From assembly GCA_904063045.1 (NCBI GenBank), contig CAJFCJ010000027.1, positions 248,001 to 312,000 on the forward strand: 64,000 bases of DNA, in the 5' to 3' direction. Below the pieces are notes generated by a model that was given only the letters and a program-made list of their open reading frames with translations, ran no database searches and was not told the DNA's origin. Of the stretch, positions 1-13,487 are shown piece by piece; position 1 is the stretch's first letter; every line of letters starts with the position of its first letter. The DNA is from Dimorphilus gyrociliatus (taxonomy: Eukaryota > Animalia > Annelida). Position numbers and translations under genes: made by a program.

Positions 1-364
1 AGCAGGTGAACAAAAGCAACGACGTACAAGTATTTATATTGTTAGAGTTAGTTAGTCAGGGTTCTTTCAAGAGGAAGATTAGGTTATTTGTCGATTTATA
101 TCAAGTTGTTTATCGTAGACAAGTCTTTTTTTTTTATACAGCAAGCTTCTTTTATTCCCTCCCTTTTTTTTATTCTTTACCTATTTATAAGCCTGTCACG
201 ATATATTGTTTAAAAATAATTGAGATTTTTTCCTTAGTATTCTACTTCGCGTAGTTAAACGTCTATTGAATATTCAGTGGAAGACTATAGAGAGACGCGT
301 AAAAGTAAGAAGAACAATAAGGATTATATATCATATGTTTTGTCAGTAAGTGTCATTTATCTTG

Positions 365-1966
365 CTATTCTGTATTAGCGACTACTTTCGGAATATGAGC
401 GAAAATTCTTTTGAGAGAAGATAAAAATGAGGATTTTTTCCCTTCTCTTCCCTTCCCCCCTCCCCCTTAAAAACATACTTACGAGGTATACATTTTCCTT
501 TTTCATCGGTCGTATAATACTTTGGTTGGCACATACATTCAGCAGCGCAGCCACTGTACAGTAGCCAGCAAACTTCACCTCGAAATGCACTGCAGTCTCT
601 ATCAGTCGCACAAGTTGGAACGTAACATGCGACGGCTGTTAAAAATTCATATATTTTAGTAGAAATATTAAAGAAGTAGTATGTTTTCTTTGGGTTTAAA
701 AAGTTAAAAATAAAAGATGTAAGATAAAAAATGACAAAAAAAGAAAAAAGTTGGTATAAAAAGGTATTACAGATTAGAGAAAGATTAATCTGATTATTAA
801 AAAGCGTTCGAAGAGATTTTTTTTAAAGCATATCTAAGTAGTTTGTCGTAGGATGACAAACAACTCAAAAGCGAAAGTATTATCTAAATCAGATCAGACG
901 ATATAAGATGCTTGGGTGGTTTCGGTCGAGTACTTTAGCAATCTGCTTCAATTACATTAGATTATACGGACTCGTCGCTAGACACCAGCAAAACCAAAAA
1001 AGATTGTATTTCCCTTATTTTTTTGTTTGTATCCTCCCGGCCCAGGAGATTGTCACTAATGGACTAAAGTGTAACAATTGGAAGTCGACCAACTTTTGAA
1101 TTATTGTCTAAATGATTATAGTGAATTGGGTAGAGTTGATTCTAGGAATTATAAAATAGCTTCGGCTAGTCTGACAAACAAAATAAGAAACAGACGAAGA
1201 AAGAGAAGAAGGAACGATAAGAAATAAAAGCATTGTTAAAAAACCGTCCGGCTAATGCGACGCGCCTCGCTAACCGTCCTTTGGGGGCTAGCAATTTCTC
1301 TTAATTATTATGAATGTGTATAGTTTGTCAGTTGATGAGCCCGAAAGAATGAGACAGAATGAAATAGGTATAATAGTTTTAGTCTATCCTTTATGTACAT
1401 TCAAAATATTCCATAGTATATTGATTTAAGTAAATAACTAGATTATATAAGACGAACGGAAACTACGCTGGTCTGTTAGGGGTGGGATTGAAAAATTTAT
1501 GGACAAACTCGTTCAATATTTACACATAATTGCTAGACTTAGATAGTTTTCCATTACTACTGTATGACTGTATGACGTAACTAAATTTAGATAATATTTT
1601 TCCGTATTACGCTGGAAAGCAGAGTGATTAATCCTTTTTTAGCTTCTCTCTCTCTCTCTCACTCTTCCTCTCTGCCGTTCTTTTTTTTAATCGATTAAAT
1701 CTAATAAAATCGAAATAAAATAGTATACAAACAAATGATCGAACGAGAAATTCGTTACATGAAAACCGGAAGTAGAAAATATGCAAAGAATACTATACCA
1801 CAATGGTACAGTGACAGGAACTACATTAGTATTATATTCTAAGAAAGCTTATCCACGCGTTGTCCGAGTTTGTCATTGTTTGTATGGCGTAAAATAAAGC
1901 TAGTATAAAAAGCTTACCTTTTAGCAAAACGATGGAGTATAATACGGCATTAATGCTACGTTCTAC
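365..1966 (-). CDS. Small secreted cysteine-rich peptide (8 Cys, EB-module/EGF-like spacing), multi-exon; start exon uncertain (possible ATG-only exon at 3062-3060)
   Basis: Exon 1966-1918 (ttcaacAG|...|GTAAGC) encodes VERSINAVLYSIVLLK. Exon 635-483 (ttaacAG|...|GTAAGT) encodes AVACYVPTCATDRDCSAFRGEVCWLLYSGCAAECMCQPKYYTTDEKGKCIP. Splice phases match (1-1). Three alternative last-exon acceptors all reach the same TAG at 367-365. This frame is absent from the ORF track. Confidence 0.55.
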
Positions 1967-4900
1967 CTGTTGAATCAGAAAAAATTCGCGTTTTAGTGTT
2001 AAGAAAATGTTGTATAGTTAAAAATTCCCTCCTTAAAAGTAAAAAGAGAATCATAACAAGTTTCTTTTTTGAAATGAAGCCAAAATCATTTTGCCTAGAC
2101 GCTATCCAACCGACTAGCTAGTAATAACAGTACGTAGTCGACAATTTATTAGATTATTGCTTCGCTTTCTACAAAGCTACAGTCAGATCTTATCTATATT
2201 TATTATTACTATCATTATTTATATTATTTTTAATCATTCCTAGAATTCTAGATGTACAGATTTTAGTATAGTTTTATCAATGGTCCGTTTACTTCTTCTC
2301 TCCTTTTCGCTTTTCCCATAGAAACTCTATTTCATAAATTTTCACTTAGATCTAAGCCAACGAAAACGTTTACAGATTTATAGACAGACATCTCTTTCCC
2401 CTTTTCTGCCTTATCCTCCTTCATCGGCTTCTTTTATAAATGAAAAAGTTTAAAACGCAAACTACCAAATTAAGTTATTATGGTCTTTCTTCTTTGCGAA
2501 ATACTCCCTTTAAGTCTAAATGCCTAACGAGCTTAAACGTCCTTAGAACTTCGACGTGATTTTAAAGTGTAACCTACGGTAATTAGTTTAATCAAGGCTA
2601 TTTCATAAATCGACAAGGTACAAGATCTGTTGTCGAAAATTAACACAACGCCAGAAGGCAAAGCGGTAGTTATTAGCTTACGACGTATTCTACTCGCCTC
2701 CTCGTAAGTAGGCAGTTAACGAAAGGTTCATAAAAGAAAAAGAGATATGGGAAAAGGCGGAAAAAGGATAGAGAAGAATTTAATGAGGGAAGATTAAGAA
2801 ATCGGCGAATTAATTACTATAAGTTCCACCTGATTGCTTCATATGATAAAAGAATTTTGTGCGATTGCTACTAGCTTGGTAGTTTTTTTTTATACATACA
2901 GATATATAGAGATAGAATATACAGTATATCTAATATCATATAAGGCTATACAACTTTACGATGTAATACGCAATAACGGAGAAAGAGGTTGAAAGAAGGA
3001 GAGGAAAGAAATAGATTATTCTCTAATTTCCTTTATTCTTTCACTAATTAACAGATAACCATTTCCGAAATGCTATTTTCTCGAACCCGTTTTGGTGCCT
3101 CTCCAGTTTTACTCGTTTTTTTCCTATTCACCTTGTCCTTCTTTTTTTCCATGACACTCACCCGTTCCCTACTCTTCCTCTCACTTATTTTCTTTTCTCT
3201 CTCTCTCTCTTGCTGTCTCTTTTCCCTGTTTTTTCTTTCTGTCTTTTTTTTTAATTTCAATTTCATTAATCATTTATCCTAATTGGAAGGAAGGATAAAA
3301 TGTCCATTTGAACAAATAATCCGTTTAAGAATCTAGAATAGCACCATTCTCGATTTTCATCCAGGTTATAGCGTTAATGGATTAATTAGTAATAAAAAAT
3401 TGAAAAAAGGGAGAAAAGTAGAAAAAAAATGGAAAAGACGGTCAGTTGGGGAGGAAAGAGAGAGAGAGAGAGAGAGAGAGGGGGGGAAGGGGCAGAGAAG
3501 GGGCAGAGAAAGTAAAACTACAAGTGAAGAATACGAAATTAGTAGCGAGAGGAAGAAGGAGAGAAAGTGAAAAAAAAACGGGACAAAAAGATAATCCGAA
3601 ATGTTGAAAAGCTTGGCAAGTTGTGATAAAGAAGAAGAAAAAAAGAAAATAATCCATAGCAAGTTGTCAACTTGCTATAGGCATTGGTTAAGTAAGGAGC
3701 TTATAAAATATAACATCATTACACATTGACTACCTGAGAAAGAATATTCCCGGTTAAAACGTCTACAATGGATTTATACACATACTGTATATATGTGCAC
3801 ATATATTGCATATCGTCTACAATATAGTCTAGATGTACGCAGGTACAAATTTAGCGTGCATAAATATGTGAGTACTTCCCGAGGATATTTTACAGAGGGT
3901 AAACTGGGAGTACTGCTCTTATTCTAATTAATTTACATTCGGTTAAATAATGGGTCGTATAGTGGAAAGCATTATATTTTCATTCAATTCCATGATAATT
4001 TTAGCTTTTTTACGGAAATCCTTGTTTAGTTAATCATTGAGCTTCTCTCTCTGTCTATCTGACTGTCTGTCTCTGCTGCTCGCTCTCTATCTCTCTCGTT
4101 CCTTCCCTTGGTCTAGCTTTCCTCTCTCTCTAAATATATATATATCTCTATTTTCTCCCTCTTTCTCTTTGAATGTTCCTCTCTCTTCAGGTGTCATCGA
4201 GTTTGTCGTTACATCAATCTGCACTTAAAAAATTCGGCTTCACCCTTACAGCGTGATTTAAACAACTTTTATTATATTTATTTTCGAGAATGATTGTAAA
4301 AACGACAAAAAAATGTATATTTTGCTTTGACTAGACTTTTTTTTTGTTTTAAATCGATCAACAAAATATCTCGAATGAAAGTTCTTTAAGCAATGTTTTT
4401 TTTTTTATTATTATTATTTTGACTTTGGTCTTAAAGTAATAGATGAAAAAAAAGGGGAGTAATTGCGTGATATTTGTAGCAAGTGAAAATTGCGTAGAAT
4501 TCTTGATTCAATTAAGAATAGTAAAAATTTTAACAAAAGAATAAACAACGTAGTATTTAAATTTTAATATTTTGAATAGATTCTTTATAGACATTCAAGC
4601 TATTTCTTTCGTTTATTTGTTCTTTAATAAATAGTTGTAAGCTTTTTCGCTTCTCTCTTTTAGTCTATTTAAATAGTAATTTCTTTTTTTCTTTTATCAA
4701 CAAATGCGTAAGATAACTTGAAAATTACACTAATGACGTTCTAAGAGGTAATTAAAGTCGATTGGTGTCTTTCTTTAGACACAATAATTTAATATATATT
4801 GTATAGAGATACATGAAAAACCTGTACTTGTTTATATAATTGTTATAATTGTGTTTTTTTTTCATAAAACATCGTAGGTGGTTAACAGAGTCATATTTAC

Positions 4901-5737
4901 GTGTCAATAAAGATGCGGGAGAGGGACAAGCAACGAGAATAGGAAATGGGAAATATATAGACAATATAGTAATCTAATACAGATAGAACCGTAGATGAAT
5001 GTAGGCAATGATAATACTTGTACCGTATAGAATAGATGAGCAAAGCAGTACATATATTACATTGTACTGTATACATATATTTATGCTATAAATAAATATA
5101 TAAACCGTATATATAAATAGTTTATTTTTTTGCCTGTAAGATTTAATTAAGAGATCGTAATGATTAATAATACTAATGGTGCTAACGAGATATACCAGTT
5201 GAAAGGAGTTATAACATGCATAAATGTATATATATATATATATAGTATAGTTTTCGATTTAAACAACGCTATTAATAAAGCCGAATTCAAAATAAAAGTC
5301 GATGGTTATTTTTGTTAATTTAGTCAGGGTTTTACAGCGCATGTACAATTAACGCATCATTTCCCATTCTAAAATATTTATAGCTACTTTGTTTGTCAAA
5401 AGAGTACGGTTAGGTTCTTCTAACATACTTACTGTCATAGTCCATTCACAGCACCGACCAACTGCTAAACTGCAGTCTTTAAGCTAGAAGAGTTTCGATA
5501 TACTATAATTTTCCCATGTAATAATAAAATCCACTCTCATATTTCTTATCTTTCCCTGTTCAATATTTTTTCTAAGCCGAAGAGAAACAAGCTTTAATAT
5601 TTCACAACTGTATATACTCTTCCTCTTTTAATTTTCCTTCTTCTTTCTCTCTCTCTTTCGCGCTATCATCCGCAAACTGTTAACGTTCTATAAGAGCTTT
5701 CACTCTATCATACCTATTTGAATGCTATTCTAACATA

Positions 5738-5780
5738 CAGGTGGCGCTTTTTATTTCGCTGTAAAAGCGCCATCTATCTG
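5738..5780. promoter_or_regulatory. Inverted pair of CTCF-like motifs
   Basis: CAGGTGGCGC (5738-5747, +) and GCGCCATCTATCTG (5767-5780; reverse complement CAGATAGATGGCGC). Both resemble the CTCF core AG(A/G)TGGCGC. Confidence 0.55.
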
Positions 5781-5913
5781 TTGTTTATATATCGGATGAC
5801 TAAGACAAAATTTGCGCTTTTTATATCAAAAATCAGAAAAGTTTTTTTTTATTTTGAAACTCACAACAATCTCATTACATATAAAAAAAACCTCTGAATT
5901 ATTCTTGAGGTGG

Positions 5914-6604
5914 TTATACTCTAGTCGTCTCATAGCCGTCATAATTTGATGTCTTTCGCCACCATAAAACTAACGACGCTACAAACAATAATGAGGTAAC
6001 ACTGACTAAAATATACAGAACGATTTTGTGTGACATAAAATTGTTCTTGTTGTCCCTTTTCCTTTTTTTTTTATCAACATCATTCTGTGGTTCAAAGATA
6101 CCGCAGTTATAACCACTACTCTGATCTTCATAATCCTCGTAGTTTGTCCAATAGTTGTCATTACCTATTGGGAGATGGAAAACATATACACGAAATACTA
6201 TTGAATGTAGTTTATCTTTACCTAATGATTCTTCAATCACTAACTTATAGCACCCACTGTCCAATTTGTATTGTAGACTGACACATATGCTACAATCCTT
6301 GTCATTGATTGCAGCTATTTTTACGTGTTCTATAAACGCATAAAGTAGATATATAATTGAAAAGAAAAACAAATTAACAAATTTTACCTAATATACACGT
6401 TTGATTGTGAGAGAGATCCTGACCACAATCTATCTGAAAACAAGCGTGTAGATAACTTGAACATTCACTGCAAACGTCCAAGGCGTCTTTAATGTCCTCT
6501 AGATCGCACTTCTTCAAAACATCACCTATGTCTGTTGATTCACTGAGGGCGAGGCTTGCTAAAAGTAAGAACACAAAAACTTTGGTTATAACTGCCGGTA
6601 GCAT
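5914..6604 (-). CDS. Orphan single-pass type I membrane protein, ~210 aa, 2 exons (6604-6388, 6329-5914)
   Basis: Signal peptide MLPAVITKVFVFLLLASLALS. The 58-nt GT-AG intron (6387-6330) joins ORFs 6374..6610 and 5914..6372 in frame. 10 Cys in the ectodomain, TM IVLYILVSVTSLLFVASLVLWW, short tail ending YDGYETTRV. Confidence 0.85.
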
Positions 6605-6881
6605 TCTCAAAAATTGATAACTTGCCCCTGCCTCTTCTCGTCTTCTATGAAAAGTTTATGTTCTTACGCAATATCTATGGTTTTTGGTATGGTTATTTAA
6701 TTTTTAAAAATTCCATTATTATTGTTATTAAGTTCATTCATTACAAACGTAAGATTTTTCACTGGGATAACCACAAAATTATAGTTTTAACCACTACGAA
6801 ATTTTTACAAAAACTAGGAAAAACTCGGTTTATTTGTCATATGACTAAGAAAGTCTTTATTTACTTTTATAGTTGAAAGGA

Positions 6882-6893
6882 GGAAGTGACGTC
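6882..6893. promoter_or_regulatory. ETS-CRE-like composite promoter motif
   Basis: GGAAGTGACGTC lies ~280 bp upstream of the ATG at 6604 (minus-strand gene). Confidence 0.4.
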
Positions 6894-6936
6894 TAAAATT
6901 ATGGTTGTTATGCTATTATAGTAAAGAGTATATATA

Positions 6937-8448
6937 CTATTGCGTTGTTTCGATAAAATGCCAATAATACTTGAGAATATAATAGGCGAAACAGTGTTTA
7001 ACCTTTTGAATTGTTTCTAAACAGATTTCAATGTCTTTTTCCTGATATATTTTTAACAAATCAACATTGTCCATAAAGAAGGAAACTAGATTCTTTTCCT
7101 TCAAATATCTAGCGTATTTATCTAGAATTATTATCGAATTCTCTTCAATCGATCCTGAATGGTCGAGATTAAATGCTAAATTAAAAACAACAGTACGTAG
7201 TTGTTGACGTAAATTCTTGGCTAATTTATCTTGTCTATCCTCTTTATACTTTTGATGAATTGTTAATAAAACTATAGTATAGGCTTTAATCAGGTTTGGA
7301 TGACTAATTGAGAAATAGTTTAAAAGTTTTATGGAAATTTCATCAAAGCAGATTTTCCAGGTTAATGCTTGAACTTCTGAATTGGAGAGTAAAATACCGC
7401 AGTTGAGTATATCTGCATAAAGATTTTGAGGGAGTAATTTCGAGGCAGTCTGTAGCCACTTTCTGCACAATTTAGGCCATTTAGCTAATCTAATGGCGAC
7501 GTTCTTCTTCATATCAAACTTTTGAGTAGATGTTGAAGTTCGTATTAAAACTTCAGAGATTGATGTGTCGATTTGAATTTCGTCGAATAGCTTCTTTGGC
7601 GAGAATATATAAGTTTCTGTAGAGTTCTTTTTCCTCTTCGATCCATCGATGATTCTAAGCGAAGAGAAAGAGTCTCTCTTCTCAAGGAAGTAAGGTTGAA
7701 ATGATCTAAAAATAGGCCTAAAAAATTTTTCTAAACGCTTCTTTTCAACGGTAACATAGAATTCGTCCTCTGAAAAATATTCCAAGTTAATCGACTCTTC
7801 GTCAATTCCGTAAGGTAAGACACTCAAGTTGACTTCGGGTACTTGTAAATTCATCTTTTCGCTTAATTTTAATAAGAGACATTCCATTTTCGGATGGGAT
7901 AGAAAGATGATTTCATTTATTCTATTCTGCGAATAACTACGTATATCGTCCAAAATTTTAGTACTATATTCTTCCATAAGAGAATGATCTTGTTGGAAAT
8001 TGGTGATCTTTTCCAGAGAATATTTCATATTAAAAAATTGATAAAACTGCTTAAATTTCATTGTTGTATAGATGATAATGATAATTACTAAAGACATTTT
8101 AGCACCGGGAAAAGAGGCAAACAAGAACCATAGAGTTCCACCCAAAAACGTTAAAATACTCTTAATATTATAGGAAGTTTTAATTAGTAGATCGAAGAAA
8201 GTTATGAATATGTAGACGCTCCTCTTTTCCATAACGTATCCACTAGTAGAGGAAGTTAAAAACTGCTTGAGATTTTCGTAAAAATTATACAATTTCAGAT
8301 GATAGGAAGATCTGTTCTCTTCGTTATTAGATTCATTTTCATTTGTTTTCTCTTTATGAAAGCTATTCTCTAGAAAATAATTATTAATATCCGCTAATTG
8401 TGAATTAGATATATATCTTGCTTTCTTCGAATTATTAGAATTCATCAT
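6937..8448 (-). CDS. Intronless 503-aa Mab-21/cGAS-like (cGLR-type) nucleotidyltransferase-fold protein with N-terminal hydrophobic anchor
   Basis: Long single ORF. Mab-21-like motifs appear in the expected order: LPYGI..EDEF, YIFSPKKL, VAIRLAKWP...KW, TWKICFDEISIKLL, LRTVVFNL, YLKEKNLVSFFMDNVDLL. Hydrophobic segment at ~aa 97-129. The CDS call is strong; the family call is by eye. Confidence 0.75.
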   Translation of the reverse strand: MMNSNNSKKARYISNSQLADINNYFLENSFHKEKTNENESNNEENRSSYHLKLYNFYENLKQFLTSSTSGYVMEKRSVYIFITFFDLLIKTSYNIKSILTFLGGTLWFLFASFPGAKMSLVIIIIIYTTMKFKQFYQFFNMKYSLEKITNFQQDHSLMEEYSTKILDDIRSYSQNRINEIIFLSHPKMECLLLKLSEKMNLQVPEVNLSVLPYGIDEESINLEYFSEDEFYVTVEKKRLEKFFRPIFRSFQPYFLEKRDSFSSLRIIDGSKRKKNSTETYIFSPKKLFDEIQIDTSISEVLIRTSTSTQKFDMKKNVAIRLAKWPKLCRKWLQTASKLLPQNLYADILNCGILLSNSEVQALTWKICFDEISIKLLNYFSISHPNLIKAYTIVLLTIHQKYKEDRQDKLAKNLRQQLRTVVFNLAFNLDHSGSIEENSIIILDKYARYLKEKNLVSFFMDNVDLLKIYQEKDIEICLETIQKVKHCFAYYILKYYWHFIETTQ

Positions 8449-11400
8449 AAGACGTGCGAATAATCTCTATCTACAACAGCTTCAACGCTGTTCTCTTCAT
8501 CGATTTCCCTGTGTTTTTCACTCGATACTATGACGATGATCGATCTACGACAAACAATAAAATGGACATAGTTTTGATAAATACGAATAATTGTCATCAC
8601 TCTTCCCTCGGTTACTCTTTTCCTAAATTCTCTCTTCTTCCCGCTTTTCAATATTAATCCGTAAAGGGAGAATTAAATGAAATTATGATTTTATTAAATC
8701 AATAGTATTTCATATTTTTCATAATCAGTAACCAATTAAGTAAATACACGAGTGAAAAAATCATTTTACTATTGTTATTATTCATTTCTTGTTTTTGTTC
8801 TTTTACTTTTCTCAGCGTTATAGATTGGTTATGGGAAAAGAGAAGACAGTGATAGATTAGGCCTAGTATATACAGAATATATATCAGTATATATATAGAT
8901 ATATACTACTTTATATAGAATACAACGACCTAATAATGGTTGTTATATTCAATGTCTGAAATGTGGATATAATTTATGAATAAATTTTCTAAAATCAATT
9001 TCTTTCTTGATGATTAAAAATAATAGGAAAGGAAGGAATATAGAAGAACAAAGTAGAAAGAGAAAAGAGAGATATAGAGCTGGAAGGGGGCGGAAAAGAA
9101 TCTTTAAAAGAAGAAAGAAAAAGGAGCGGAGGGGGGGGGATAAACATACAGTACATATAAATATAAACTGTATATTACAGTATATACAGCATAATAACTA
9201 TAAAAAGAGACTACTCGCTCTTTCCTTAGAAATTAAAAGCCTATAATCTTAAGATAATTTATCAAAAAGGTAACTTTATTTTATAGATTTTTAGAGGTCG
9301 TATTCATTCAATAGGGTTCTTTGCCCAAGAAAATTATATTAATTAGAAAAATATCTTCTCCTTCCATTCCTTCTATTCATTCAACTTCAAAGACTTATTG
9401 AAGTTTGCCACTAATGAATAATTATTCCTTTTTATCTTTATAGCATTTTGGGTTAATACAATAGACTTTTTGAATGAATTTCGTCTTGAATAAATAGAAC
9501 AAAAAGTTTATATTTGATATAATCAATAAGCTATTTAATTAATAGTATTATCTACAAATTTACTTATAATTATGCATGTACATTGATAATCTTTGAATAT
9601 ATTGCTAATTTAATCGATAATTCGTGAATTATACAAGGAAGAGGGAATATAAAGAGGTTAATTAATCTTGTATTATTCAAGTGAAGTAAATGAAAGGGTT
9701 AGTGGAAATTCTTCAAAAGAATAGAATTTTATTGGAATCCATGTCAAGGATATTTAAAACGTCTAAAGCTAGAAAATTACTTGCTTGGTTTCTTTCGCAT
9801 TCTTTTTACAAGTCACCGTTTAAAAGAGAAGGATGAAAAGATGAAAAGATGAAAAGGAAAGCTGGCTGAAAATTTTAGTGGGTGAGGGATAAAGGGAGAA
9901 AATCTAATCCTTCTTCATAAACCTTATATAATGTAACTAAAAAGAATAAACTTTTTTAAATAGGGAAAATATTATTAATTTTCTCTTATCCGTTAGATGA
10001 CACTGCTGTTTTTTCTCAGCAGAAAAAGAAGAAGGATTAAACGCCAAACCCATTAATGTGTATTCTTAATATCTAGGAAGGTTTTGAAGAGTCAATCGAG
10101 CTTTTTCAAGGGAAATTAGAAGGAAATGAAAGAGACTTGACGATATTGTTACTTAATAAAGACGAAAAAGAAAAACATAATGTCTAAAAATTACCCAGAA
10201 GAAAACGGGATTTGATCTGTAAAAGGAGATTAAAGAAAAAATGACATCGTTATTACAAACGCTCGGTGTTTGCCATGCAAACAAATGATATATTATTGAT
10301 TAATTTTCTAGGCAGTTATTCCCTACTGTACTATCATCAGAATAGTTGTCGATTCTATTGAATGAGATGCGTCGATAGAATACAATAAATAGACTTCCGT
10401 AAAAGGGGACTATTAACTGTTTTTTCTAGATTATTGCTCAACGATTTGTTCTTTTTTTTCTCTCTTTCATTCATTCTTTCTCTTTTTCCCTTTATTATTC
10501 GCTTATTATTACTTTATAAGTAGTTTAAGAGTATAAATCAAAATTTAAACAAAACATTAACACAGTGGAAAATATCAAATGAACAATAAAAAGAACTGTT
10601 TTAATATTTATATATTATTATTACTATTAATACTTGTTCTATGCTCTGTTTTCCTTATTCATCTATCCGTCCATCCATCTATTTGTCTATCTATCTATCA
10701 ATGTATTTGTTCATTCGTCTATCTATGATTCTTACGCATTGTACCCCATTCACCTACCGTCCCAACCTAGCCGGTAGTTCTGCTTTTTCTCTATCTCCTC
10801 TTCTCTTTTCCTGTTGAGAAAATAGAACTTATTAAAGAGTACGAACTAAAGGGAAAAGAAGAAAAAGTTTTTAATTTATTTATCGAGTACGGATTATTAA
10901 TAGTAATTATAAATAGCTGGAAAGACTGTTAATGAATACTAATTAATAGTGAAAGTCATTGGTCATGACTACTCCTACCTAATTTCCTGCTACTTTTCAT
11001 AGTCTTCTTTGGTCAAAGCACCTCTCTTTAAGCTCTATTGAATAATTTATTATATAATATTCAGTTTAAGCTCTTAAAATACTGTTAGGCAGGGTGTGGG
11101 GAAATTTTTTGTTGTCTCTTTCTTTCTTATCTCTACCATATATAATGATATAAAAATAAAAGAATATAGAAATTTAACGGCAATGATAGAGAGAGAGAGA
11201 GAGAGAGAGACAGAGAGTAGAAAAGATAAGAAATATAATTTAATTTGTTCAATTCCAATATATGATACGAATAATAAATATAAGAGTTTCGTCTGGTAGG
11301 AACGTTAAGTGTACACTTATCTCAGACCGTTTTGGACAAGATGCAATGCTCACTCAAGTCGTGTTTTAGACGACCGTAGAACCAAAATTTATCGTCATCT

Positions 11401-13487
11401 ATTTCCTGCTTTATAAAATCATGGGATTTTCTTTCGACCTCATCAATTCTTTTTTCCTTTCATCCTTCCTTTACCCTATTGTCATATAGCACCTCCTTCT
11501 ACTCTACCACCGCCAAATTCTATCTTGTATTACTTTTATTACTATCTTCCACTTTTTATCTTGTTCGTAATTTTTTCGTGTTCCTTCTTCTCCGTCTCCT
11601 CCACCAATAACGTGATTGCATCTATACGAATATATTATGTATTTTACAGCTGAAAATTCTTATATAAATACAATATATAATGACTAACTATATAAATATG
11701 TAAATAAAGTTTCTTCTATAGAATATTCACAGAAAATATGGATGTATTAGAAAACACAATAATATAGATTTATGCAGACGATACACAGTATATATACAGT
11801 ATATATATGTATATAAAAGGTATATATTCTGCAAATACGGTTGTTATTTATTGTTGTTGTTGGCTTTTGAATCTATTAATATCGTGTTGAAGATAATTAT
11901 TGTTTTTCGGCTTTGGAATGCAAGTTTCATTTCACTGATTTACTATTTTAGTTCCATTTAAAGTAAATATTTTATAATAAACATATATATATATATATAA
12001 ATATACTGTATATATACTATATATATATAGATATATGTGTATATATATTGATATTATTATTTAAATAAATACATGATATTTATTCTTTTTATAATAGTTT
12101 CATATATAATTTCTAACATTTATTAATAATTAACAAATGTTTATTGGTTGGACAGTTTCTTCTTTCTTTTATTTCTTCTTGTTAAATTTTTATATTTATA
12201 GAAAATAAGATATTTCACAAAAATTGTTAATATCTTTCACTTTTCATCCTCTATTACCCGCTTTTCCATTCTCTCTCTCTCTCTCTCTCTCTTTGCCTCT
12301 CTTTCTTCTACCCTCTCTCCCTCTCCTCTCTCTCTATCTCATTTTTTTACTTTCAATAAATTTTAGTTGGTTGCTATATTAAGTTTATTTTGACAACTTT
12401 TATCCCTTTACCACCGAATTTTTTCTCCTACTTATAGTATCTGAAATACTGTATATTAATATATATTAGTATATAAAAATATAGATGTATATTACAATTG
12501 ATATATCCTATATATTGTTATGTGTACTAATATTTTTCACCCATGTTAATTCCCTGTCTTCCGTTTAATAAACTGTACCTACAGAATCTACTTTTAAAAG
12601 GTAAATGAACTCTTAAAAATGTGATCCAATGAGAAAATTATTACCAAGACTTTTCATCAACAATAAAGTAAATAGAAAATTAATTAATTGATAACTTTAT
12701 AAAGATTAATGAATGAAAATTGCAGAGGAAGCATGATAAAGAATGAATTAATCAAGTTGAAGTTGAAGTTATTCTACAGATATTTTGTTTTCTAATTTTA
12801 GAATGAAGTATATTTTTTATTAACACTTTCCTTCTTTTTCTTCTCTCCTTTCTTTCTTAGTCGGCTGCTTTTCTCTTTAACTTGTCATGCGCCATGAAAC
12901 ACTAGCCTTATGACATTGAAAGTGTAAATAAATCTCTTTTTCTACCCAAAATTAATAAAGTATTATGACGATTTAATCCGTTTTAATCTAAACTCCTACC
13001 GGCTAACGCTATAATAATTAGGAAAAAACAATAAATAATTAAGTAGAGTAGGTCAATCAAGAGACGCCACTCGCTTCAGACGCTTCAGAGGCGTCACATG
13101 TTGTACAAACATGCGACGATCGGCACAGCATGAGCGTCTAAAGGATTTCATTATAATTTTTTTTTTACTCGACGTTTTATCTGCAATTAATTATGAAATG
13201 TACAAGGTAAAGTAAACGTTTAATTTTCAGATAACTATACTAATATAGGAAAGAAAAGAAGAAGGGGTAGATGAGTAGGAAAACGACTAGTAGTAGTAGT
13301 CATAGTAGTAGTAGTAGTAGTACGAGTATCAGAAATATTAGGAGGTTATCTAACATATTAGTATATATATATATATATTTCCTGGAAGTTGTGTCCCAAA
13401 TAGATTCATGCTAAAAAGAGAAACTGTAATATGATTTAGATTATTTACTAAACAGTTCATTATTCTATGTGTATTTGATACAAGAAT

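Follow-up and report, generated by a model that had tools for sequence, protein, structure and literature searches.

Positions 6937-8448 (minus strand) of the 64,000-nucleotide stretch of Dimorphilus gyrociliatus DNA analyzed here (the window) are a genuine, transcribed, single-exon gene. The 503-amino-acid protein that it encodes is probably a lineage-restricted, membrane-tethered pseudo-enzyme derived from the Mab-21 family. The protein has three parts: a hydrophilic N-terminal tail of 76 residues, a predicted membrane anchor at aa 77-130, and a globular region of ~370 residues. Judging from profile comparisons, the ~190 C-terminal residues at aa 299-481 are most likely of Mab-21/cGAS-type descent and would correspond to the end of the nucleotidyltransferase (NTase) domain and the Mab-21_C lobe.

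A transcribed, intronless gene with a single detectable ortholog

At 503 aa, the open reading frame (ORF) is by far the longest in the window, where the runner-up encodes 319 aa. It begins with two consecutive ATG codons (ATGATG) and ends with a stop codon at 6937-6939 on the minus strand. A spliced transcript contig spans 5909-8747 and runs from 6388 to 8747 without any joint; its two introns (57 and 58 nt) both lie within the downstream gene. Because there is no joint across the ORF, we conclude that the gene is expressed and truly intronless. The original prediction of an intronless 503-aa ORF is therefore confirmed by the unspliced transcript as well as by the ORF list.

We identified one full-length ortholog, P0002, which is 59-61% identical to the Dimorphilus protein and colinear with it from start to stop. 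The second ATG of the ORF may be the true start, because P0002 begins MNS. The ortholog carries 18 extra residues in a variable loop at ~aa 269. Between the two sequences, dN is ~0.27 with synonymous sites saturated, and it is uniform along the protein; judged from this pairwise comparison, purifying selection acts across the whole protein length. An exhaustive HMMER search of 1.84 billion representatives returned nothing but the protein itself and P0002, as did word searches (E ≤ 10), in agreement with the lineage restriction that had been proposed.

The 5′ leader of the transcript is 299 nt long (8449-8747, minus strand), as given by the extent of the transcript contig. It contains several upstream ATGs, one of which opens a uORF of 50 codons (8597-8445) that ends in a stop overlapping the main ATG. 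None of the uORFs is conserved in the leader of P0002. A pattern scan of the sequence beyond the ORF found AATAAA, a polyadenylation-type signal, twice (at 6861-6856 and at 6834-6829, minus strand), 76 and 103 nt downstream of the stop codon; both copies are predicted to be poly(A) sites in use.

The public annotation carries a different model at this locus, DgyrCDS13706, in which translation starts at Met188 and splicing to downstream exons yields a 510-aa type I-like fusion protein. Under that model, the long ORF would in part be 5′ UTR. One transcript contig does cover both genes. However, the intron that the model requires (~320 nt, with a junction from 6972 to 6650) is retained in this contig, and its proposed length compares with a median intron of 66 bp in the D. 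gyrociliatus genome (PMC7854359). Moreover, the colinearity with P0002 includes residues 1-187, which the model leaves untranslated, and the C-terminal YYW.FIE ahead of the ortholog's own stop. Constraint on residues 1-187 equals that on the remainder of the protein, the stop codon of the 503-aa ORF is followed by the AATAAA signals, and the downstream part has a Met and a signal peptide of its own. It is very unlikely that the annotated model is right; DgyrCDS13706 is a chimera of the 503-aa gene and the next gene. An operon reading of the two-gene contig is also unlikely, because operons and trans-splicing have been excluded for this genome (PMC7854359) and because AATAAA signals follow the first gene.

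A conserved tail precedes a predicted membrane anchor

The N-terminal tail (aa 1-76; 8221-8448, minus strand), delimited by alignment and by constraint by region, is 65% identical to that of P0002, with ISNSQLADINNY and FLTSSTSGYVMEKR invariant, and matches no family. It is followed by a hydrophobic block (aa 77-130; 8059-8220, minus strand) that we delineated from Kyte-Doolittle profiles of both orthologs. The block divides into segments at aa 77-89, at 97-116, and at 118-130; residues 114-117 are a P-G-A-K turn, and Lys residues lie on either side of the block. Both orthologs share these peaks of hydrophobicity, which bears out the predicted membrane-anchoring block. A hydrophobic block had been proposed at aa ~97-129; its presence and conservation stand, but its extent is wider and tripartite. 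The block could form one transmembrane helix or a helical hairpin. The predicted anchor is N-terminal to the Mab-21-like region, as in membrane-anchored Mab-21 proteins.

Sub-threshold but colinear matches to two Mab-21 domains

The Mab-21 signal in Pfam lies in two consecutive regions of the C-terminal part of the protein. The first (aa 299-378; 7315-7554, minus strand) corresponds to the C-terminal half of the NTase domain PF03281 and includes W324-P325, W331, GILLSN, and TWKICFDEISIKLL. PF03281 was the sole Pfam match for five cuts around aa 290-380 (E 0.037-0.11, 13-14.5 bits). The match covers approximately positions 110-195 of the 197-position profile, always ending at profile position 195 on aa 376, and positions 1-110 were unmatched in every cut tested. 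PF03281 was not detected in P0002.

The second region (aa 379-481; 7006-7314, minus strand) is a candidate Mab-21_C-like helical domain (PF20266). Here, aa 435-481, including LRTVVFNL and YLKEKNLVSFFMDNVDLL, match positions 55-101 of the 102-position profile. Among 24,736 Pfam families, PF20266 was the top or only family for every cut containing aa 435-481; E was 0.13 when the full protein was searched and improved to 7.1e-4 (20.1 bits) for aa 380-485. In P0002, it was likewise the only or top match, in the same profile columns, with E from 3.5e-3 (17.9 bits) to 1.4.

Neither PF03281 nor PF20266 reached the Pfam gathering score of 24.1 bits. A significant Mab-21/NTase HMM match had been set in advance as a check of the original prediction, and the best score obtained, 20.1 bits, falls short of the cut-off. 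Clearly spurious matches did as well or better by E-value: 0.015 for histone H2B (in the PDB), 0.012 for DUF5767, and 9e-5 for JetA (in P0002 only). The JetA (Wadjet) match concerns a 52-residue helical stretch, is below the cut-off, and is missing from the Dimorphilus protein, and we rejected it. The arrangement of the Mab-21 matches is that of the family. PF03281 ends at ~aa 378, and position 1 of PF20266 extrapolates to ~aa 381; therefore, the two domains abut in order, as they do in Pfam-verified mab-21 proteins, where the junction is at residues 245/247. Of the proposed Mab-21 membership, what holds is a recurrent, colinear pair of PF20266 and PF03281 matches; what does not is significance by the 24.1-bit cut-off.

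We then compared the protein with a 117-sequence mab-21 orthogroup using hhalign, which is independent of Pfam calibration. In a word search from a verified mab-21 protein, the best 120 matches listed were all mab-21 orthologs. Three vertebrate rows (P0003, P0115, and P0121) were left out of the mab-21 alignments, and a contig from the bait search carrying a vertebrate-type MAB21L1-like sequence (L070) was left out of the comparisons. Two further loci from the bait search, L092 and L079, encode bacterial response-regulator-like proteins and were rejected as chance matches to the bait.

The hhalign comparison aligned aa 294-376 with mab-21 155-243 on diagonal 136, in the same register as the PF03281 match, and aa 441-466 with mab-21 304-329 on diagonal 137 (p 0.05). 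Identity to mab-21 was about 25% over 79-85 aligned columns. Taken alone, the best single segment was equaled or bettered by 141 of 400 shuffled decoys, so that the by-eye MAB21 alignment of the middle region, as a single segment, is no better than shuffled sequence. In global mode, hhalign returned a meaningless 14-column alignment. For the two segments together, 160 column-shuffled decoys gave pA 0.34 and pB 0.05, and the p-value for diagonals lying within 6 of each other was 0.019. All three criteria together were satisfied by none of the 160 decoys, and the product is ~3e-4, for a test split at aa 377/378 that was chosen after the Pfam boundary had been seen.

The N-terminal core is unrecognizable and the active site is degenerate

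Between the anchor and the first Pfam match (aa 131-298; 7555-8058, minus strand) lie conserved helices at ~135-199 and then a beta-rich stretch at ~221-290, as outlined by low-confidence AlphaFold models. The overall order in these models, helices, a beta region at 221-312, and further helices, is compatible with an NTase core plus helical bundle. If the protein is Mab-21-like, the spine helix and the N-terminal NTase core would fall in aa 131-298. This region has no Pfam match, and the expected core register emerged from hhalign solely in a comparison confined to aa 200-260 (P 0.2). The N-terminal NTase core is unrecognizable, with neither a Pfam match nor statistical support from hhalign.

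All of the motifs quoted in that prediction were found at the positions given, and the degenerate active site that it described is also present. G214 is followed by I in Dimorphilus and by M in P0002, in place of GS. E229, Y231, and K314 are conserved with P0002, E227 is D in the ortholog, and D312 is Ser. The third acidic position had been assigned to K314; hhalign instead places Q309 there, as in mab-21, and neither residue is acidic. Active cGAS-like receptors (cGLRs) are recognized by the active-site motif h[QT]GS-X8-20-[DE]h[DE]h-X50-90-h[DE]h (Li et al. 2023, PMC9980059). Regular expressions of this motif, strict and relaxed, found it in neither ortholog, which speaks against the suggestion of a possible cGLR. 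Searches against PADLOC (including its CD-NTases) and NCBIfam gave no match.

Structure-based and PDB searches

AlphaFold2 run on the two-sequence alignment gave a pLDDT of 37 for the full protein and 39 for aa 135-503, both unusable; the cGAS-like predicted fold that had been set as a further check of the original prediction was not obtained. A Foldseek search of the PDB with the aa 135-503 model (pLDDT 39) returned TM-scores of ~0.1, which is noise. Searches of a language-model atlas with the full protein and with aa 185-503 likewise returned noise and no usable match. Sequence searches of the PDB, run with one sequence alone, with two profiles, and with a segment, recovered no cGAS, MAB21L1, or MiD49/51 chain. 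What they did return was histone H2B, at E 0.015-0.08, along with a phage neck protein at E 0.015-0.025, both of which we took for chance matches.

DISCUSSION

We favor the reading in which the protein is a Mab-21-derived pseudo-enzyme held at a membrane. Its catalytic signature has been lost, with GS replaced by G-I or G-M, the second acid by Tyr231, and the third by Gln309 (or Lys314), and the protein would make no nucleotide second messenger. It probably acts instead as a scaffold or adaptor, keeping its Mab-21-like domain on the cytosolic side of an organelle membrane, like MiD49/MiD51, ITPRIP, and TMEM102. We infer Mab-21 ancestry from sub-threshold statistics, and fold, topology, place in the cell, and scaffold role are proposed on the same reading; a tethered scaffold is more likely than an immune signaling enzyme.

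A rather unlikely alternative is that the protein has no relation in fold to Mab-21 and is an orphan membrane protein specific to its lineage, in which case the Pfam and hhalign signals would be chance matches aided by a K/I/L/N/S-rich composition in a genome of 30% GC. In favor of this alternative, every Mab-21 match is sub-threshold and has comparable rivals in H2B, DUF5767, and JetA, the score of the single hhalign segment lies inside the null distribution, the HMMER and word searches found no relatives, neither the atlas nor the PDB sequence searches gave a usable match, and AlphaFold was unable to fold the protein. However, chance would have to pick, from 24,736 Pfam models, two that belong to one family and place them without overlap, in order, and abutting within a few residues. 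It would also have to reproduce the PF20266 match in P0002 and to generate a two-segment colinear hhalign pattern with an empirical p of ~3e-4.

The Mab-21-like C-terminal lobe is probably present, as it would also be in an active membrane-tethered enzyme of the cGLR type with a non-canonical site (for example, E227/E229 and another acid) that produces a nucleotide messenger at the membrane. Position 227 is acidic in both orthologs (E or D) and E229 is shared by them, and the two lie 13 and 15 residues from G214, a cGAS-like spacing. Yet the residue between them is D or N rather than hydrophobic, and the sole hhalign register puts Y231 in the place of the second acid and Q309 in that of the third. 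D312, the sole nearby acid, is Ser in P0002, no PADLOC CD-NTase model matches, and the cGLR motif is missing from both orthologs under the published criteria (PMC9980059). We regard such an enzyme as highly improbable. It is also quite unlikely, if less so, that the protein is a new cGAS/Mab-21 branch that has kept ligand or nucleotide binding and serves as a dinophilid-specific sensor at an organelle membrane, a role in which a remodeled pocket (E227, E229, Y231, and Q309) and the conserved, putatively cytosolic N-terminal tail may take part. A different reading, likewise unlikely, is that the Mab-21_C lobe is the sole ancestral part and that the alpha/beta domain joined to it on the N-terminal side is new.

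As a tethered pseudo-enzyme, the protein would resemble several known systems. MiD49 and MiD51 (MIEF2 and MIEF1) are Drp1 adaptors of the mitochondrial outer membrane in which an N-terminal anchor is followed by an inactive scaffold of the Mab-21/NTase fold, and MiD51 binds ADP. The parts of the Dimorphilus protein are arranged alike: its predicted anchor is followed by a probable Mab-21-like region whose active site is degenerate. In contrast to the MiD proteins, its anchor is preceded by a conserved tail of 76 aa, and its hydrophobic block is tripartite and 54 aa long rather than a single transmembrane helix; in addition, PDB searches that include MiD chains detected no sequence similarity. 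The listing of the Mab-21 family that covers MiD49/MiD51 also contains ITPRIP/DANGER, ITPRIPL1/2, and TMEM102, membrane-associated members that are regulators or adaptors without known NTase activity (PMC7718949). These proteins reach the Pfam Mab-21 thresholds, whereas the Dimorphilus protein does not, and no orthology or sequence relationship to MiD49/51, ITPRIP, or TMEM102 appeared in the exhaustive HMMER, word, or PDB searches.

The protein is colinear with mab-21 and MAB21L1-L2 in both local hhalign matches, and its Q309 aligns with a Gln that occupies the third catalytic position of mab-21; each of the mab-21 genes that we fetched is likewise an uninterrupted ORF. Mab-21 itself, however, is soluble, ~360 aa long, and 75-100% conserved among the invertebrate sequences fetched, whereas the Dimorphilus protein is predicted to be membrane-anchored and is known from two sequences. 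If the Mab-21 assignment holds, cGAS and the cGLRs belong to the same superfamily, but the protein lacks their defining active-site motif, homology in the N-terminal NTase core is undetectable, and the signal is C-terminal only.

The genome of D. gyrociliatus is among the smallest of animals, and the genes that it retains are presumably useful. For its annotation, our analysis corrects the chimeric public model DgyrCDS13706. It also provides a worked example in which weak family signals in taxon-restricted genes are tested by colinearity and shuffled decoys rather than by nominal E-values. Because an active enzyme is very unlikely, the gene raises no new question in innate immunity. If our reading is true, the protein would be a further case, in an annelid, of the cGAS/Mab-21 fold serving at a membrane as a tethered module without enzymatic activity, and it would show how far the family can drift, below all curated thresholds and beyond the reach of AlphaFold, while under strong purifying selection.

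Results

The ORF at 6937-8448 (minus strand) encodes 503 aa and is by a wide margin the longest in the 64-kb window, whose overall GC content is about 30%. In a word search, its last 316 residues matched at full identity the NCBI protein DgyrCDS13706 (P0001) of the annelid Dimorphilus gyrociliatus, the source of the window; P0001 is a 510-aa public model that begins at internal Met188 of the ORF and is spliced near the ORF end into exons further downstream. This model (5914-7887, minus strand) joins ORF residues 188-493 to a downstream gene. We conclude that it is a chimera of two genes, based on four lines of evidence. An orthologue of 523 aa (P0002), recovered from two Logan assemblies (runs SRR23372228/9) and 59-61% identical to the ORF, is colinear with it from residue 2 to a YYW.FIE tail just before the orthologue's own stop. 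One public run yielded a 2,724-nt contig of a spliced transcript that spans 5909-8747; it is joined only across two GT..AG introns (57 and 58 nt), both within the downstream gene, and is uninterrupted from 6388 to 8747. The downstream part has a separate Met ahead of a stretch that resembles a signal peptide, and a TM helix at its C terminus. Lastly, a pattern scan placed two AATAAA signals 76 and 103 nt past the ORF stop codon. The junction in DgyrCDS13706 (roughly 6972 to 6650) would require an intron of about 320 nt, which the transcript contig does not support; the median intron in the Dimorphilus gyrociliatus genome is 66 bp (PMC7854359).

The downstream gene (5914-6603, minus strand) is a separate unit of three exons, with introns at 6161-6217 and 6330-6387. 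Its product of 191 aa has a signal peptide, a Cys-rich ectodomain, a lysine-rich stretch, and a C-terminal TM helix. The single transcript contig covers both genes, including the 330-nt spacer, and would be compatible with a bicistronic RNA. However, operons and trans-splicing were excluded for this genome by its genome paper (PMC7854359), and the contig therefore likely reflects abutting or overlapping UTRs, or read-through, rather than a bicistronic unit.

The 299-nt leader of the ORF transcript contains a 50-codon uORF (8445-8597, minus strand), whose TGA overlaps the main ATGATG start, and four shorter uORFs. The P0002 leader also contains uORFs, with sequences dissimilar to those of the Dimorphilus leader. 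A pyrimidine-rich low-complexity tract (9020-9140, minus strand), in which a C run precedes CT-rich repeats, is located some 300-400 nt upstream of the transcript 5' end and may be promoter-proximal. The public annotation of the locus (L093) calls no genes for several kb on either side (about 8750-13100 and 1-5900), which is unusual compared with about 209 genes per Mb in the genome.

Comparison of the two orthologues gave a dN of about 0.27, with saturation at synonymous sites (pS about 0.75). Amino acid identity is 56-65% in each region, and the N-terminal tail and hydrophobic block are no exception; the entire 503 aa are therefore functional. When 1.84 billion cluster representatives were searched exhaustively with an HMMER profile, the only matches were P0002 and the Dimorphilus protein, and word searches, one of them at E <= 10, gave the same two. 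At the sequence level, the family is these two proteins.

Residues 1-76 are hydrophilic and include invariant stretches; no signal peptide was found at the N terminus of the 503-aa protein. Residues 77-130 form a hydrophobic block of three segments (77-89, 97-116, and 118-130) that includes a PGAK turn and is flanked by lysines at both ends. The second and third segments total 33 residues, a length that suits a single long TM helix as well as a helical hairpin. In low-confidence models, helices are predicted at about 155-199 and from about 313 onward to the C terminus, with a beta-rich region at about 221-312 between them. The two AlphaFold models were poor for want of alignment depth, and a fold search with the better one returned noise.

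The original prediction described this protein as a membrane-anchored, divergent Mab-21/cGAS-like nucleotidyltransferase. Against the 24,736 Pfam models, the full protein matched only the Mab-21_C helical domain (PF20266; E 0.13), aligning aa 439-481 to profile positions 59-101 of 102. This match improved with cleaner cuts, to E 0.008 for aa 340-503 and E 7.1e-4 (20.1 bits) for aa 380-485, and was the only or top match each time. P0002 matched the same columns (E 3.5e-3 for residues 440-505; weaker in longer cuts). In five different cuts around aa 290-380, the sole match was the Mab-21 NTase domain (PF03281; E 0.037-0.11), covering profile positions of about 110-195 of 197 and ending at aa 376 with the predicted TWKICFDEISIKL motif. 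The first 110 positions of PF03281 had no match in the protein, and PF03281 was not detected in P0002. Back-extrapolation places PF20266 position 1 at about aa 381, so the two half-matches abut. None of the matches attains the Pfam cut-off of 24.1 bits.

For comparison with genuine members, and to gather sequences for a profile, we baited a metagenome collection with a short, degenerate DNA version of the C-terminal MAB21 motif and recovered many invertebrate mab-21 genes. Pfam confirmed these as PF03281 (E 1e-41, residues 64-245) followed directly by PF20266 (E 1e-29, residues 247-344), and the Dimorphilus protein has its junction within a few residues of the corresponding position. Host-associated and environmental metagenomes (L008, L009, L042, L051, L089, and others) held many complete, uninterrupted invertebrate mab-21 genes with mutual identity of 75-100%. 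A vertebrate-type MAB21L1-like contig, possibly human (L070), was left out of all comparisons and searches. Two further loci (L079:2130-3260 and L092:350-1603) were rejected as bacterial response-regulator-like ORFs carrying the exact peptide YFLPNLDLF by chance.

Nominal E-values are untrustworthy for this protein because spurious matches arise at similar levels. These include DUF5767 (E 0.012) and, against the PDB, histone H2B (E 0.015) at aa 265-343 (7420-7656, minus strand), where DGSKRKKNSTETYIFSPKKLFDEIQIDTSISE resembles the H2B tail and first helices. The H2B-like stretch has no Pfam Histone match and is weaker in P0002; we judged it a chance likeness that offers a useful gauge of noise. 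P0002 alone gave a sub-threshold match to the bacterial Wadjet protein JetA (PF18982; E 9e-5) along 52 helical residues (374-425), judged spurious as it is not found in the Dimorphilus protein.

We therefore calibrated the Mab-21 similarity offline with hhalign, aligning a two-sequence query to a 117-sequence mab-21 orthogroup profile, with column-shuffled decoys of the query as the null. The best local alignment paired aa 294-376 with mab-21 155-243 (score 16.0; WP/WP, GILLSN/GFDLLSK, and TWKICF/AWVxSF). The motif match originally proposed by eye lacks significance when taken as one segment, as 141 of 400 decoys equalled or exceeded its score. The C-terminal part alone aligned aa 441-466 to mab-21 304-329 (score 18.1; decoy p 0.05). 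The two segments lie on diagonals 136 and 137; in 1.9% of decoys, the two best segments came as close as 6 residues or less to a shared diagonal. All three properties were combined in none of the 160 decoys, and multiplying the three frequencies gives about 3e-4, for a split point picked after the Pfam boundary had been seen. In the N-terminal core, the expected register (LEYFSEDEFYVT to LEVISPTEFEVV) appeared only when the alignment was confined to aa 200-260 (P 0.2); in wider regions, a non-colinear 8-mer outscored it. PDB sequence searches, a language-model atlas, PADLOC, and NCBIfam gave no Mab-21 support. We consider it likely that the C-terminal half is Mab-21-derived.

Three criteria define cGLRs: the motif h[QT]GS-X8-20-[DE]h[DE]h-X50-90-h[DE]h, homology that extends over both lobes, and support from AlphaFold (Li et al. 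2023; PMC9980059). The motif is absent in its strict and relaxed forms from both orthologues, which argues against the proposal of a possible cGLR. A very loose form matches the Dimorphilus protein only, because D312 is Ser in P0002. In the hhalign registers, G214-I215 (G-M in P0002) occupies the GS position, E229 the first acid position, and Y231 the second; the third is Q309, where mab-21 itself also has Gln. The degenerate active site of the original prediction is borne out, and an enzymatic role is very unlikely.

Discussion

Taken as a whole, the protein is probably a membrane-tethered, catalytically inactive scaffold derived from Mab-21, for which we infer location, topology, and partners. 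The hydrophobic block would anchor the protein in a membrane, with the Mab-21-like region facing the cytosol and recruiting partners. With a hairpin anchor, the conserved N-terminal tail would likewise be cytosolic and could take part in recruitment. Membrane-anchored inactive Mab-21 proteins are a known kind, and the proposed scaffold would resemble examples such as MiD49/51, ITPRIP, and TMEM102. A published listing of the Mab-21 family (PMC7718949) includes these proteins and gives them organelle roles.

The Dimorphilus protein has no bearing on cGLR signaling. If the assignment is true, it would be an extremely diverged new member among the membrane-anchored inactive Mab-21 proteins, confined to Dimorphilus plus one relative. 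Its value would then be moderate, lying in an example of fold drift and a correction to the annotation.
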